This document shows, piece by piece, positions 5,119 to 26,535 of a stretch of DNA of 64,000 nt (its first letter is position 1; every line of letters begins with the position of its first letter). The stretch lies in the sequence record KY499642.1, one strand, 5' to 3'. A program made the position numbers and the translations under genes. The notes beneath the pieces were generated by a model. That model saw only the letters and a program-made list of their open reading frames with translations. It searched no databases and was not told the DNA's origin.

Positions 5119-6723
5119 ATGGCTATTGACATCTCTAAACACCCGGAGGATTTGTTGGCGGCACGAATCTCCGAGGTGAACCCAAACTTGCCTGCCCTAA
5201 CTCGAAACGAAATTAACATTCGTCGTATTACACCATTCACCGTTGACCGTTGGGATATGGCTATTGACAAAGGTGCCGATAACTACATCGCAGGTTACCC
5301 GACAGTTCGTTACATTGAACCGCCTAAATGGAGTTCTCGTGATTACGCGGGTTTTGTAGTGCGTAAGACTCTAACGTTCTCTGGTAATCAGATTCTGTTA
5401 AAGGCGCGTTCCGATAACAACTTTACGGTCTACATTGATGGTGTAAGTGTCCTAAGTGGTACTGATTACATGACGGTTTACGAAGCGACCATCCAACCAA
5501 CTGCTGGTGATCATGAAGTGTTAATTTCTTCGTACGATCAAACAGGCGGTGCTGGCTTAGCATTCGTGTTCGATGACAACGGCACGCTCGTTGTGTCTGA
5601 TACAACATGGCCTTGTACTGAATACACTGGACAAGACCCACTGTTCTACTCCGGTGAAATCTACGAGACTACTGCTGAAGTCGATATGAAGATTGCACCA
5701 TCTGAGGCTTTTGGCGACTTCGTTGAGTTCCGCTACCCACGTATTCCAATCGATAAACTGTTTGGTCAAATCGATGAAGATACAGGAACCGTAGAAGTAG
5801 AAGTGAAGTACCCGTTAGACCAAATCCAAATGTTGTCTGGAGCGCTGGATAACTTTGAACAGATTTATACTAACTGGTATCGTTTCTCACATAACACGTC
5901 TGGTAACTATCCGGCTAATGAAGCTGAACTGAATGGTTGGAGTTACATCGCTGAATACGACTGTATCCAATCTACTCAGAACTCAGGTACTTACGTAGGC
6001 TTTATCTCCGATGACTTTGCAGACGACTACATCTTTAGTACGTTAGTCTCAGCACAGAACTCGGACGACGATGCTATCAACATTAACCTTGGCGCATTTA
6101 AGCAAGGTGATATTGATGCACGCGAACATACGTTGTCGGTATGTTGTGCTCGTGGTGGTGTGAATGGTGCGTTCATTACTGTCTACGATAACTACTTGCA
6201 GTCTGACGCTAAGCGCCTAATCACTATTGATGGAAACACTACTGACCGACCAAACAACGGCATTGGCTGGACGCCTTGGTACGCTCACGTATACGCTCGC
6301 CGCACTGGTGATAAGATTTACGTATGGGTATTGATGGAAGAAGTCCCTACGGTAGAAGGCAAGACTCGTGATGAAATCCTACTTGGTTTGGTGGATGACT
6401 CTGCTGCATTAACTGAAGCAGACTTCATTGCGCGTGGTTACAAAGCTGCGGTCATTGATCTCGCAACTCAAGCGCCGCGCTTCAACCGTTCTGTTCGTTA
6501 CGGTTACGGTCAGTACTCTCAGTCTTATGCACGTTTCTGGAACATTCGTCGTCCGAACGATAACCCAGAAGTGACGCCTGAACTGAAACAGTACTTCCTA
6601 ACTACCTTTGGTTTTAACATGGGTGACAATGGTATTGAAGTAGAGAACCTCGGTGCTAACAAGTTCCAGATTTCATTTGATAACGTCTTGTACAAAGGCG
6701 ATTTGACAATGTTGCCGTACTAA
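5119..6723 (+). CDS. putative virion/fibre-associated protein with PA14-like beta-sandwich and thrombospondin C-terminal-like lectin domain
   Basis: GAGGAG SD before ATG 5119; ARSDNNFTVYIDG...GDHEVLIS...GGAGL (PA14-like); STQNS...SDDDAI...RYGYGQYSQ shared with C-termini of the 1716 and 1714 aa fibres. Confidence 0.7.
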   Translation: MAIDISKHPEDLLAARISEVNPNLPALTRNEINIRRITPFTVDRWDMAIDKGADNYIAGYPTVRYIEPPKWSSRDYAGFVVRKTLTFSGNQILLKARSDNNFTVYIDGVSVLSGTDYMTVYEATIQPTAGDHEVLISSYDQTGGAGLAFVFDDNGTLVVSDTTWPCTEYTGQDPLFYSGEIYETTAEVDMKIAPSEAFGDFVEFRYPRIPIDKLFGQIDEDTGTVEVEVKYPLDQIQMLSGALDNFEQIYTNWYRFSHNTSGNYPANEAELNGWSYIAEYDCIQSTQNSGTYVGFISDDFADDYIFSTLVSAQNSDDDAININLGAFKQGDIDAREHTLSVCCARGGVNGAFITVYDNYLQSDAKRLITIDGNTTDRPNNGIGWTPWYAHVYARRTGDKIYVWVLMEEVPTVEGKTRDEILLGLVDDSAALTEADFIARGYKAAVIDLATQAPRFNRSVRYGYGQYSQSYARFWNIRRPNDNPEVTPELKQYFLTTFGFNMGDNGIEVENLGANKFQISFDNVLYKGDLTMLPY

Positions 6724-15092: not shown

Positions 15093-15120
15093 AGGGAGGC
15101 AATGCCTCCCTTATTTTTTT
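15093..15120 (+). terminator. intrinsic terminator
   Basis: AGGGAGGC-AAT-GCCTCCCT then T-run. Confidence 0.85.
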
Positions 15121-15132
15121 GTACTTAGAACG

Positions 15133-15163
15133 AAAATCAAAATAGATATATTTCATTGAAAGG
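15133..15163 (+). promoter_or_regulatory. phage early-promoter-like motif, copy 2 (divergent)
   Basis: AAAATCAAAATAGATATATTTCATTGAAAGG, 12 nt after terminator. Confidence 0.6.
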
Positions 15164-15198
15164 ACATATGTACTAAAAGAACTAAAAGGAGGTGTATT

Positions 15199-15318: not shown

Positions 15319-15382
15319 TGGAATGGTATAGGTGGGTAATTCCCCTATACCTCTAGAATATATTATCTCGGAGAAAATAACA

Positions 15383-15808
15383 ATGCAACAATACACACTT
15401 ACTGCGCTTCAATCTGTAATGGTTCTTATCATGAGCGAAACAAACGAGCCGATGACTGGATACGATACGGCTAAGACAATTACAGAGCGTGGATATAAGT
15501 GGTCACATCAACAAGTGTACCGTGACTTGGCTAAGATGCCTTTGAATCTAACTGAGGTTCCTCAGGAAGGCAAGCCGGATAAAAAGAACTACACTTTGCA
15601 GTCTGATGTGGAGTACATACACAACGCTAAGATTATTCCTATTCCGGTTATTGAAGAATACGAACTGCTAGACGTAGCCCGTGAGAAATGGGAAATCCTC
15701 AACAAGCGTTTGGAAACAATCACCCTGAATTATGAACGTGAGCTGGTGAAGTTTGAAATCGGCTACCTTGAGAAACTAATTACTAAACTACAAGCTAAAG
15801 CAGCTTAA
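15383..15808 (+). CDS. aphA-like: AphA-like PadR-family winged-helix transcriptional regulator
   Basis: TGYDTAK...WSHQQVYRDLAKM...PQEGKPDKKNY versus Vibrio AphA TGYDITK...ASHQQVYRELNKM...PQEGKPDRKVY (recalled); GGAG SD before ATG 15383. Confidence 0.85.
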   Translation: MQQYTLTALQSVMVLIMSETNEPMTGYDTAKTITERGYKWSHQQVYRDLAKMPLNLTEVPQEGKPDKKNYTLQSDVEYIHNAKIIPIPVIEEYELLDVAREKWEILNKRLETITLNYERELVKFEIGYLEKLITKLQAKAA

Positions 15809-15819
15809 CGGAGCTAATA

Positions 15820-16641
15820 ATGGAAGTTATCAAAATCGACATCAATGACATGGTTGCTACCCCTGAATTAAAAGAGGCGGTTGCCAAGATTGGGTTTGAT
15901 GAATACGAATCGCGCTTCAATCAAATCTTCAATGACAATGAGCTGGAGTCTGAGTTCCGTGCAACGTTGTCGGAACAAATGTCTGACGCGATGGATGACT
16001 GGAAAGTCGTTATCATTAACGGTGCTAAGTCTCACGCGTGGCAAGAAGAGATGGCGTTGGCTAAGTTCCCTGAGCAGCCTATCTTTACTAACTGTATCAA
16101 TGGCGAACCGTATATCTACATTGATATGTCAATGATGCCGAACATCCCTGCGGATATCCGTGATGTGACTCTCGACTACATGCTGGTTAAAGAAGGCGTG
16201 CATCGTGAGCAGATCATCCGTGGTGATATGGTTATCTTCGATGGTACAATTACGTGGAAAGGCGTTACTTACACCGTTGACCAAATCCATGAGATGGCCA
16301 GTGAGAAAACCATGGAACTGCTGAACAGTGATGCTGAAGACAACCAATACGATGAGAAAGACATCATGGTCTTGGTTGATTGTCAACACGAATGGGAGCG
16401 CGAAGCAACCGTCCGCACGCTAGCAGGTCTATCGCACATCTACGAGATGGAACTCTCTGACGTACAGCGTAAACTGGTAGATGACTGGGTTAAAGAGTTT
16501 ATTGACGATGTGAATGCTCATGCAGGTGATGACGGTATTGAACTGGAGTCTCCGGTAATGAACTTTGGTGCAGGTACGAAAGTAGCAGATATCAAAGACT
16601 GGGTAAACACATTGTTCATGTGTGATGTAGATAACATGTAA
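15820..16641 (+). CDS. zincin-like protein with altered metal motif (KEGVH)
   Basis: LVKEGVHREQIIRGDM...WKG..Y...EWEREA follows the HExxHxxQxxxG...WKG...WExEA phage metallopeptidase pattern except first His. Confidence 0.5.
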   Translation: MEVIKIDINDMVATPELKEAVAKIGFDEYESRFNQIFNDNELESEFRATLSEQMSDAMDDWKVVIINGAKSHAWQEEMALAKFPEQPIFTNCINGEPYIYIDMSMMPNIPADIRDVTLDYMLVKEGVHREQIIRGDMVIFDGTITWKGVTYTVDQIHEMASEKTMELLNSDAEDNQYDEKDIMVLVDCQHEWEREATVRTLAGLSHIYEMELSDVQRKLVDDWVKEFIDDVNAHAGDDGIELESPVMNFGAGTKVADIKDWVNTLFMCDVDNM

Positions 16642-16646
16642 TTTAG

Positions 16647-16679
16647 ATTGAGAGTGCCTTCGGGTGCTCTCAATTTTTT
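16647..16679 (+). terminator. intrinsic terminator
   Basis: ATTGAGAGTGCC-TTCG-GGTGCTCTCAAT then TTTTT. Confidence 0.85.
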
Positions 16680-16719: not shown

Positions 16720-17157
16720 GTGCGAAAACCCGTCAGGAGAATTATAATGCTGCACGATAGTTTTAATGCAGTGGTTCGCATTCGGTTACGTTACGGGTTG
16801 GATATCAATCTTGATGTGACTGAGCATTATGTGGACGCTATTAAAGCAGCGGTGGGTCCGCATAACGGTAGAACTCTTGCAAAGAAGCTACCAAAGGGAA
16901 CCACGACGTGGACGGCAGATGGACGAAAGGAAGCAATGCATTTCCTCAGTAAGTTAAATGAGTTTGAAGTCATTAACGAACGGATTGAGGACATACATTC
17001 TAAATTACGTGGCTTAAACGAACACATGGCAACTTTCAATTTGATAGAAGACATTCATCATATACAGCCTGTGGTCTTAGCACTTCGTAATGGGTTTCGT
17101 TCTAACCACGAATTATCCCGAAAAGGATATACAAAACAGTACAACGTCTATAACTAA
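16720..17157 (+). CDS. hypothetical protein
   Basis: 145 aa ORF; start may be ATG 16747 after GGAG. Confidence 0.7.
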   Translation: MRKPVRRIIMLHDSFNAVVRIRLRYGLDINLDVTEHYVDAIKAAVGPHNGRTLAKKLPKGTTTWTADGRKEAMHFLSKLNEFEVINERIEDIHSKLRGLNEHMATFNLIEDIHHIQPVVLALRNGFRSNHELSRKGYTKQYNVYN

Positions 17158-25329: not shown

Positions 25330-26535
25330 ATGCGTTTACAACTATTTAAAGGTATCACTACTTACTCTGGCGTTCAAACAGAAGTGCTGTTTCTTTCTGA
25401 AGGTGAGAGTACTGACCTAGCCGTCTACCTACCTGGACGTGTTAAGATGGTGCCAAATAAAGGCTCTGTTCCTACGTGGAGTCCTGAAGGTGTAATGTCT
25501 ACCCGTATCAAAGAAATCCTTAAAGCTAAAGGTATGGGTACGCGCCATTACCATCAGGCAGAAAACCATTCGCCTGCACGTCATCTGGCGACGCTACTTC
25601 TTTTACTTGAAGTGAATGCGTTAACTATCGTTGTGGATAAGAACACAGTGACTGTTATTACACAGCGTGATAGTGAGCCAACTGATAGTGTATTGACTGG
25701 CGTAAAAGAATCTATTGTTGAACTATTCAAGTCGTTCAATGTTGACGAACTCACCCGCGCACTACGCGGATTTGATGACATCCAAGAGGTAAACGTTTTG
25801 ACTACAGAAACTGATATTGCAGAAGTGTATACGCCGAGTGAAGAAACACTGGAGCTGGAAAAGACCTGTGAAGTGATCAACCAAATCCTTCGCAAAGAAG
25901 GTGATGTTGCAAACAGTCACATCACTATGGAATGTGGCTGTATCTGTGTACGCATTCCTGAGTTCGGTACTATCTGGACAACCATCTCTGAAGATGATGA
26001 AGATGTGCAAGAAGTTCATATCAACACTAAGTCTGCTGCGGTGAAAGATCGTCTCAATGTCCTGAACAATGAAATGGTAACGCAGGCTATTGAAGGTGTG
26101 CTACGTCACGTCTCTAAAGACTGCGACGCACCATGGCAAGCAATTGTTCGTCCTACGTGTACAATCAACTACCCAGACGGTGAAGTCATGCCTGAAACTA
26201 AAGGTAACGCACGTCCACATCGTGAGCGTTCTATCCGTGAAATGACACATCAGGCCGATGTGCGCTTCAAGCTTCCAGTTACTCCAGTGCTGTACAACTA
26301 CACTAACATTCAGGTTGCTGTAGATGGCGCGCGCGTTGTTAGCTACACCAACAACGTACGTCTGCAAGAAATGCAGTACGAAGGTGACCCAGTCATCGGT
26401 GTGATTCTGGACTTCAATCACCCAATCGCTGGCATGCACGACATGAATGCAGTTCGTAGCAAGAATCCTAACTTACCTATCTACATTCTGTGGAATAGTG
26501 AAGCGGGCCCAATGCTGGAACTGTACGTTGAATAG
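25330..26535 (+). CDS. hypothetical protein
   Basis: GGAG SD before ATG 25330 in ORF 25264-26535. Confidence 0.85.
   Translation: MRLQLFKGITTYSGVQTEVLFLSEGESTDLAVYLPGRVKMVPNKGSVPTWSPEGVMSTRIKEILKAKGMGTRHYHQAENHSPARHLATLLLLLEVNALTIVVDKNTVTVITQRDSEPTDSVLTGVKESIVELFKSFNVDELTRALRGFDDIQEVNVLTTETDIAEVYTPSEETLELEKTCEVINQILRKEGDVANSHITMECGCICVRIPEFGTIWTTISEDDEDVQEVHINTKSAAVKDRLNVLNNEMVTQAIEGVLRHVSKDCDAPWQAIVRPTCTINYPDGEVMPETKGNARPHRERSIREMTHQADVRFKLPVTPVLYNYTNIQVAVDGARVVSYTNNVRLQEMQYEGDPVIGVILDFNHPIAGMHDMNAVRSKNPNLPIYILWNSEAGPMLELYVE

Follow-up and report, generated by a model that had tools for sequence, protein, structure and literature searches.

AphA is the master regulator of Vibrio quorum sensing at low cell density. 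It binds boxes of the form ATATGCA-N6-TGCATAT and represses luxR/opaR/hapR, qrr4, and aphA itself. Quorum sensing in vibrios governs receptor expression, biofilm formation, and several anti-phage traits. The vibriophage VP882 is said to encode a homolog of a host quorum-sensing transcription factor, VqmA-Phi, whose ligand sensing and function were reportedly shown by experiment by Silpe and Bassler in 2019. Homologs of AphA have been described in phages as well. The protein family PHROG 13512 includes AphA homologs from Sargassum Vibrio prophage.8 and from vB_VpaS_MAR10, and a prophage "AphA homolog" of this family is analyzed in a 2026 paper, which also speculates about a link to quorum sensing (PMC13670528). 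For phage pVa-22, a 2025 paper describes gp98 as a PadR-type regulator that may modulate quorum sensing by AphA-like action (PMC12685585). We found no experiments on any member of the AphA-like phage family in the literature.

The 64,000-nt stretch of DNA analyzed here, called the window throughout, is part of the Vibrio phage pVa-21 (KY499642.1; 100% identity, with window coordinate + 62000 equal to record coordinate). The first-pass annotation had taken the carrier for a lytic jumbo phage, and pVa-21 is indeed a phiKZ-like lytic jumbo phage of 232 kb that infects V. alginolyticus (PMC6472347). As it carries PicA homologs, it has been placed among the nucleus-forming phages (10.1101/2024.03.21.585822), and it encodes its own RNA polymerases (PMC6472347; 10.1101/2024.03.21.585822). 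The gene of interest, pVa21_098, appears to encode a small sequence-specific DNA-binding regulator of the PadR superfamily that belongs to PHROG 13512, a family of Vibrio phages and prophages only. The annotation of pVa21_098, its family as a named PHROG, and the quorum-sensing hypothesis are already known. What is new here is that the similarity to AphA is confined to the DNA-reading head, that poisoning of AphA through heterodimers is unlikely, that the gene was probably not acquired from host aphA in recent times, and that phages of different lifestyles carry the family, all of them Vibrio phages.

The gene and its transcription unit

The ATG at 15383 agrees with the GenBank annotation (Table 1). 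It is taken as the real start because GGAG precedes it, because homologs begin with the same MQQ, and because a longer open reading frame (ORF) would have to cross a conserved intergenic hairpin; the longer ORF from GTG-15332 was rejected as the gene on this ground. The three peptides quoted in the first-pass annotation are all present in the translation of 15383-15808, with TGYDTAK at residues 25-31 (15455-15475), SHQQVYRDLAKM at residues 41-52 (15503-15538), and PQEGKPDKKNY at residues 60-70 (15560-15592). Against three orthologs, dN/dS is about 0.1 in both halves of the gene, and both halves are under purifying selection. Window positions 15538-15637 form a divergence hot spot against the related phage pVp-JHP1101, with 65% nucleotide identity between flanks of 84-98%, and this hot spot spans the linker and the wing strands on either side of an invariant GKPD turn. 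The leader and the small ORF upstream of pVa21_098 are 95-98% identical to those of pVp-JHP1101.

Table 1. Features of the pVa21_098 locus, in window coordinates
Feature	Position	Strand	Remarks
Intrinsic terminator ending pVa21_097	15093..15120	+	Stem AGGGAGGCA/TGCCTCCCT and T-run; conserved in JHP1101 and contig L099
Phage-specific promoter-like element	15130..15175	+	Core GATATATTTCAT at 15145-15156, A-run upstream, GACATATGTAC downstream; conserved in JHP1101 and contig L099
Unannotated 39-aa ORF, one predicted transmembrane helix	15199..15318	+	First gene of the operon; preceded by AAAGGAGGTG
Stem-loop GGTATAGG-N11-CCTATACC	15325..15351	+	Between the small ORF and the regulator gene
Shine-Dalgarno GGAG	15370..15373	+	9 nt before ATG 15383; conserved in relatives
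AphA-like PadR-family regulator gene pVa21_098	15383..15808, including stop codon	+	141 aa; GenBank label "transcriptional regulator"
Winged helix-turn-helix domain, residues 8-75	15404..15607	+	AlphaFold2 model; sole part homologous to AphA
Lineage-specific C-terminal helical domain, residues 76-141	15608..15805	+	AlphaFold2 model; presumed dimerization module; ends -AKAA
pVa21_099	15820..16641	+	273 aa, acidic; begins 11 nt past the regulator gene; synteny kept in all pVa-21-like contigs
Intrinsic terminator closing the three-gene unit	16645..16676	+	

The predicted transcription unit would run from the promoter-like element through the 39-aa membrane ORF, the hairpin, the regulator, and pVa21_099 to the closing terminator. 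The 39-aa ORF has a strong Shine-Dalgarno sequence, is annotated in pVp-JHP1101, and is conserved in three metagenomic relatives (L104, L099, and L094); in all of these genomes it lies immediately upstream of the AphA-like gene. Neither this ORF nor pVa21_099 has a Pfam or PHROG match. A conserved pairing of the regulator with its downstream neighbor was considered and rejected, as pVa21_099 and the gene that follows the homolog in phage BONAISHI are not similar. The gap between pVa21_099 and pVa21_100 holds a 136-aa ORF (16747-17157, +) that is unannotated in pVa-21, annotated in pVp-JHP1101, and called on contig L099, and for which no family match was found.

The hairpin ahead of the regulator gene is the sole dyad of its type in the window. 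In L099, L104, and L094 the sequence differs yet the stem still pairs, through compensatory changes and a G.U pair, as would be expected of an RNA element (an attenuator, stabilizer, or processing site, for example). The tract after it is A/T-rich but has no T-run.

The first-pass annotation placed the regulator under an early promoter. A repeated promoter-like motif does lie 238 nt upstream of pVa21_098, ahead of the 39-aa ORF, but the phiKZ early consensus TATATTAC (TATATTAY) is not enriched in the window, with 3 matches against 5 expected, and the phiKZ early-promoter class was rejected for this element on that count. The repeated motif, GATATATWTYAT, occurs five times without mismatch in the window, each time on the + strand (7108, 15145, 24346, 56519, and 63845), where 1.2 are expected even with one mismatch allowed. 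The copies are found 40-60 nt upstream of ORFs or after terminators, most of them following intrinsic terminators, and they can be aligned for about 45 nt, including a conserved A-run on the upstream side and a conserved AGTGA on the downstream side. One copy precedes a lytic transglycosylase gene. The motif is probably a promoter class of a pVa-21 RNA polymerase. The downstream part of the element, GACATATGTAC, was not enriched in the window scan.

The DNA-reading head and the C-terminal domain

The AlphaFold2 model of pVa21_098 (pLDDT 96.8) is a PadR-type protein of two domains. The head is made up of α1 (residues 8-20), α2 (26-35), the recognition helix α3 (42-51), and two wing strands (54-61 and 64-72), followed by a strand (76-80) and three helices (87-92, 96-110, and 116-140) in the C-terminal half. 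The model thus has the subfamily 1 PadR fold of α1-α2-α3, a β-hairpin wing, and a helical C-terminal domain. Foldseek returned B. subtilis PadR, PadR-DNA complexes, Rv1176c from M. tuberculosis, and other PadRs as the top PDB matches, with probability 1.0 and E about 1e-4. V. cholerae AphA (1YG2) did not appear among the 50 best matches, and global TM-scores reached only 0.4-0.5, so the structure search confirms the PadR fold without singling out AphA. This is likely due to how the two domains are oriented in the monomer model.

Sequence comparison is more discriminating. The best PDB match of the single sequence in phmmer is V. cholerae AphA (1YG2), with E=3.5e-7. When a family profile built from the 19 closest relatives of pVa21_098 was searched against the PDB, V. 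cholerae AphA (1YG2) scored 2.2e-16, M. tuberculosis Rv1176c (8IOI) 1.9e-8, and B. subtilis PadR (5X11) 5.9e-4, while all other PadRs had E above 0.03; equal similarity to generic PadR proteins, which the first-pass annotation had named as grounds for giving up its reading, was not seen. Alignment against a canonical AphA alignment by hhalign gave a probability of 99.7 and E=5e-26 over 65 columns. By these scores the resemblance to AphA is far above chance. They also make the head specifically AphA-type and not generically PadR-like, because AphA is by far the best solved relative and generic PadRs are much weaker.

The motifs of an AphA-type head, TGYD, SHQQVYR, and PQEGKPD.K.Y, are present in pVa21_098, and the counterparts given in the first-pass annotation (TGYDITK, SHQQVYRELNKM, and PQEGKPDRKVY) are truly those of V. 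cholerae AphA in the 1YG2 alignment. B. subtilis PadR contacts DNA bases through Tyr20, His38, Ser39, Gln40, and Tyr42, and through Lys64/Leu65 of the wing (PMC5728393). When these residues were mapped onto the phage protein and AphA through HMMER alignments, the two agreed at all equivalent positions (Y-H-Q-Q-Y), as they do at the wing tip GKPD. Relative to AphA, the head has deletions of 3 residues before α3 and 4 after it.

Pfam and NCBIfam are of little help in placing the protein. The Pfam PadR model (PF03551) does not match pVa21_098 even at E<=1 and an NCBIfam scan returned no match; the family assignment therefore comes from PHROGs, the PDB, and homologs. The PHROG 13512 "transcriptional regulator" profile matches residues 5-87 with E=1.7e-16. 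Membership in the PadR superfamily is transitive, since PF03551 misses the protein itself and matches 59 of 82 homologs.

The C-terminal half is a different matter. No homology to AphA was found past residue ~75 by phmmer, the family profile, or profile-profile comparison with hhalign, which covers columns 9-75 only and not the ~179 aa of full-length AphA. The AphA C-terminal domain Vir_act_alpha_C ("virulence activator alpha," PF10400) was absent from pVa21_098 in a Pfam scan, and 14 canonical homologs carry it. The C-terminal region had been described as shorter and diverged, and this stands, with 141 aa against 179. Family members bear several unrelated C-terminal domains. A C-terminal -AA occurs in 18 of 87 phage-type AphA-like proteins, in several clades, and in 0 of 32 chromosomal AphA-type proteins; residues 138-141 of the pVa-21 protein (window 15794-15805) read AKAA. 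The tail resembles the ssrA/ClpX C-terminal degron, and its bearers may be short-lived regulators.

Proteins of PHROG 13512 would be built by joining an AphA-type DNA-reading head, with the recognition helix SHQQVYR and the wing tip GKPD, to an unrelated helical dimerization domain of their own. For pVa21_098, a dimeric winged-helix DNA binder with an AphA-type head and its own dimerization module is a well-supported description, of which dimerization and DNA binding are the predicted parts.

Relatives, distribution, and origin

An exhaustive HMMER search of 1.84 billion representatives at E<=1e-3 found 92 proteins, the best of which are 137-165 aa long. The nearest relatives are short Vibrio phage and prophage proteins of PHROG 13512, and a canonical Vibrionaceae AphA representative (P0077) ranks ~70th of the 92 with E 2.8e-4. 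The expectation that Vibrionaceae AphA would supply the best matches was therefore not borne out, and the head motifs also extend beyond Vibrio. Vibrio and Photobacterium chromosomes encode proteins with these motifs (44-47% identity over residues 8-72), as do those of cyanobacteria, Marinobacter, Pseudomonadales, and Ketobacteraceae (33-42% identity), while Rv1176c of M. tuberculosis shares HQQ.YR and G.PDKKVY. As cyanobacteria, Marinobacter, Pseudomonadales, and M. tuberculosis carry them, the motifs mark a PadR subfamily wider than the Vibrionaceae.

In the phage database, all 103 of 103 homolog-bearing records are Vibrio phages, and only 3 records cover >=80% of pVa21_098; a scan of IMG/VR gave 4 loci only. 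Carriers include pVa-21, pVp-JHP1101, the jumbo phage BONAISHI, the N4-like phi50-12, the siphoviruses D93, D65, 264E42.1, and phiVP505, and the temperate-type 2E1; they span unrelated lineages with different transcription machinery. The GenBank note for phiVP505_23LXQ pA_0054 reads "aphA." In lambdoid Vibrio-type prophages (L095, 6001-6432; L098, 6001-6426), the AphA-like gene directly follows a cI-like repressor (HTH_3 and Peptidase_S24) and precedes a DUF3799 protein (PF12684) and RecT, heading the leftward early block. This is the position of a first leftward early gene or of a moron expressed in lysogens. The homolog in phi50-12 lies in a string of small genes upstream of RNAP1, and together these loci make early or immunity-region genes the recurrent context.

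The first-pass annotation called the protein a phage homolog of AphA. This holds for the winged-helix head, which is specifically AphA-like, but the C-terminal half, the relatives, and the trees speak against an ortholog. In maximum-likelihood trees, both a quick tree of full-length proteins and a careful tree of heads only, all chromosomal full-length AphA-type proteins form a well-supported clade without any phage isolate. The pVa-21 protein sits in a clade of six with support of 98-99, and the next-nearest row in the head-only tree is another phage-type protein (P0009). The spacings from Tyr27 to His42 and from His42 to Gly63 are 15/21 in the pVa-21 protein and 17 other phage-type proteins, and the equivalent spacings are 18/25 in 28 of the 30 chromosomal proteins with measurable spacing. 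On sequence grounds pVa21_098 is not an AphA ortholog, because its C-terminus is non-homologous, its nearest relatives are phage and prophage proteins with which it has in common two indels absent from every chromosomal AphA, AphA stands so far down the ranking, and the trees place it outside the chromosomal clade.

The spacing signature and the unrelated C-terminus point to a long-standing phage-borne lineage, and pVa21_098 was probably not captured from host aphA in recent times. Ranking, indels, C-terminus, and trees all disfavor such a capture, although AU tests that forced the pVa-21 clade together with Vibrionaceae AphA, a group named after the tree had been seen, stopped short of formal rejection (p 0.49 for the quick full-length tree; p 0.072, delta lnL 43, for the careful head-only tree). 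A second annotated "transcriptional regulator" of pVa-21, pVa21_006 (record 6061-6519, outside the window; locus L105), is a winged helix of ArsR/BlaI type. It was rejected as a paralog of pVa21_098, to which it has no similarity.

Candidate targets and comparison with known regulators

The published autoregulatory AphA box lies ~240 nt upstream of chromosomal aphA (PMC3440409). As a positive control, a scan upstream of chromosomal aphA genes gave 11 matches against 3.3 expected and recovered this box (PMC3440409). The same scan upstream of 12 phage aphA-like genes gave 0 against 3.1 expected. Within the window, which is 28% of the pVa-21 genome and the scope of the operator scan, the consensus AphA box has 2 matches against 3.8 expected, and AphA half-site dyads with spacers of 0-20 number 6 against 7.4 expected, with no enrichment overall. 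Dyads with an N5 spacer occur at 26003, 51718, and 56957 (3 against 0.2 expected, 2 mismatches each); they are taken as chance because all lie inside coding regions with that many mismatches and because 21 spacers were tried.

The likeliest reading, which we hold tentatively, is that a pVa21_098 homodimer formed through its own C-terminal helices would act outside the phage nucleus, binding half-sites of AphA type in the host chromosome, and would there mimic or compete with the host low-cell-density regulator AphA. Host targets are favored because the family is confined to the phages of one host genus yet crosses unrelated transcription systems, because pVa-21 DNA is shut away in a phage nucleus and transcribed by the phage's own polymerases, and because AphA-type dyads are neither enriched in the window nor found upstream of the 12 phage aphA-like genes. 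Several considerations temper this. The two head deletions and the different dimer stalk may alter operator geometry; a different dimerization domain could impose another half-site spacing, and AphA boxes therefore need not be bound. The likeness of the head may be inherited rather than mimicry, because bacteria without Vibrio quorum sensing share the motifs. The trees, too, set the phage clade apart from that of chromosomal AphA. A gene pool common to Vibrio phages may be enough to explain the restricted distribution, and when a nucleus-forming phage infects, the host DNA may be broken down or may not matter. The place of the gene in the immunity region of prophages would suit a phage regulator just as well.

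Such a phage regulator is the possible, if doubtful, alternative. The protein would bind operators in the genome of its own phage, for which in pVa-21 it would first be imported into the nucleus, and would time or repress phage genes, with the AphA-like head a matter of shared ancestry only. The gene of temperate relatives belongs to the immunity and early region beside cI and cro, where phage regulators sit, and it is found in early-type blocks of phi50-12, D93, D65, and phiVP505; both the trees and the indel signature suggest that phages have long carried it separately from host AphA, and a conserved hairpin and a promoter-like element lie upstream. However, the intergenic regions of the window hold no repeated long operator-like dyad, the one dyad close to the gene has the marks of an RNA hairpin (G.U pair, compensatory changes), and the core of the promoter-like motif, GATATATATC, spans 10 bp only, less than a winged-helix dimer would need. 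The family is common to phages whose RNA polymerases and promoters are unrelated, which is hard to square with a regulator of phage-specific promoters, and transcription in pVa-21 is expected to be independent of host RNA polymerase. Quite improbable is a DNA-binding role apart from transcription or quorum sensing, whether of nucleoid or centromere type like AspA, as a small-ligand sensor like classical PadR, or as a decoy for host defenses. PadR-fold proteins do include effector sensors and a segregation protein (PMC5728393), the 39-aa membrane ORF and the acidic pVa21_099 are uncharacterized neighbors, and the -AA end in 18 of 87 phage-type members suggests controlled turnover. Against this, no positive evidence was found for a nucleoid, ligand-sensor, or decoy role, the C-terminal domain is small and the AlphaFold2 model has no evident ligand pocket, and the wing and recognition helix are strongly conserved, as is typical of sequence-specific binders. 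The dominant-negative competitor of the first-pass annotation, which would tie up host AphA in inactive heterodimers, is the least credible of these proposals and very improbable. The N-terminal domains are similar and the N-terminal helix of the PadR family adds somewhat to the dimer interface, but heterodimers are needed and the dimerization half is not homologous to that of AphA: it has no likeness to Vir_act_alpha_C at the sequence or profile level, falls short of it by about 40 residues and differs in the number of helices, and is replaced by several unrelated domains among family members. Competition by a homodimer at AphA-type sites on host DNA, the preferred reading, involves no poisoning of AphA by heterodimers.

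A broader and less likely extension of the preferred reading would make the "AphA head" a portable module common to unrelated Vibrio phage lineages, with interchangeable dimerization domains and, in about 1 in 5 members, an ssrA-like -AA tail. Such proteins would occupy host AphA boxes early in infection or in lysogens and lock the host in a low-density-like state, with luxR/opaR off and receptors and defenses reset, for a time set by host proteolysis. If true, this would be a family-wide, host-genus-specific takeover of the quorum-sensing master switch. Even a single phage-borne factor that reads AphA sites would, if confirmed, be a direct viral handle on that switch, and could also explain the "antivirulence" phenotype reported for pVa-22.

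Among described proteins, AphA of the Vibrionaceae (PDB 1YG2; PadR subfamily 1) is the closest to the head of pVa21_098, which is 46-47% identical over residues 8-72, with 10 of 12 residues identical in the recognition helix, 9 of 11 in the wing, and identity at all inferred base-contacting positions. The two differ in that AphA has 179 aa and pVa21_098 141, with Vir_act_alpha_C replaced by an unrelated shorter helical domain, and in that pVa21_098 is phage-encoded, has two head deletions, falls outside the chromosomal clade in the trees, and has no AphA box upstream. Rv1176c (8IOI) and B. subtilis PadR (5X11) have the same two-domain PadR subfamily 1 fold and are top Foldseek matches, but their sequence similarity to the pVa21_098 family is much weaker than that of AphA. 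Other members of PHROG 13512 have the same head, the same restriction to Vibrio phages, and the same speculative link to quorum sensing, whereas the pVa-21 clade has its own C-terminal domain and belongs to a lytic nucleus-forming jumbo phage, not a temperate siphovirus. In the sister phage pVa-22, gp98 is almost certainly the ortholog of pVa21_098, as it has the same gene number and 98-99% identical proteins exist; it has been published as an annotation only. The second "PadR-type" regulator named there, gp6, corresponds to the ArsR/BlaI-type pVa21_006, and the description of two PadR-type regulators in pVa-22 probably does not hold for gp6. VqmA-Phi is a precedent for a Vibrio phage with a homolog of a host quorum-sensing transcription factor, although it belongs to a protein family unrelated to pVa21_098 and its phage, VP882, is temperate and plasmid-like.
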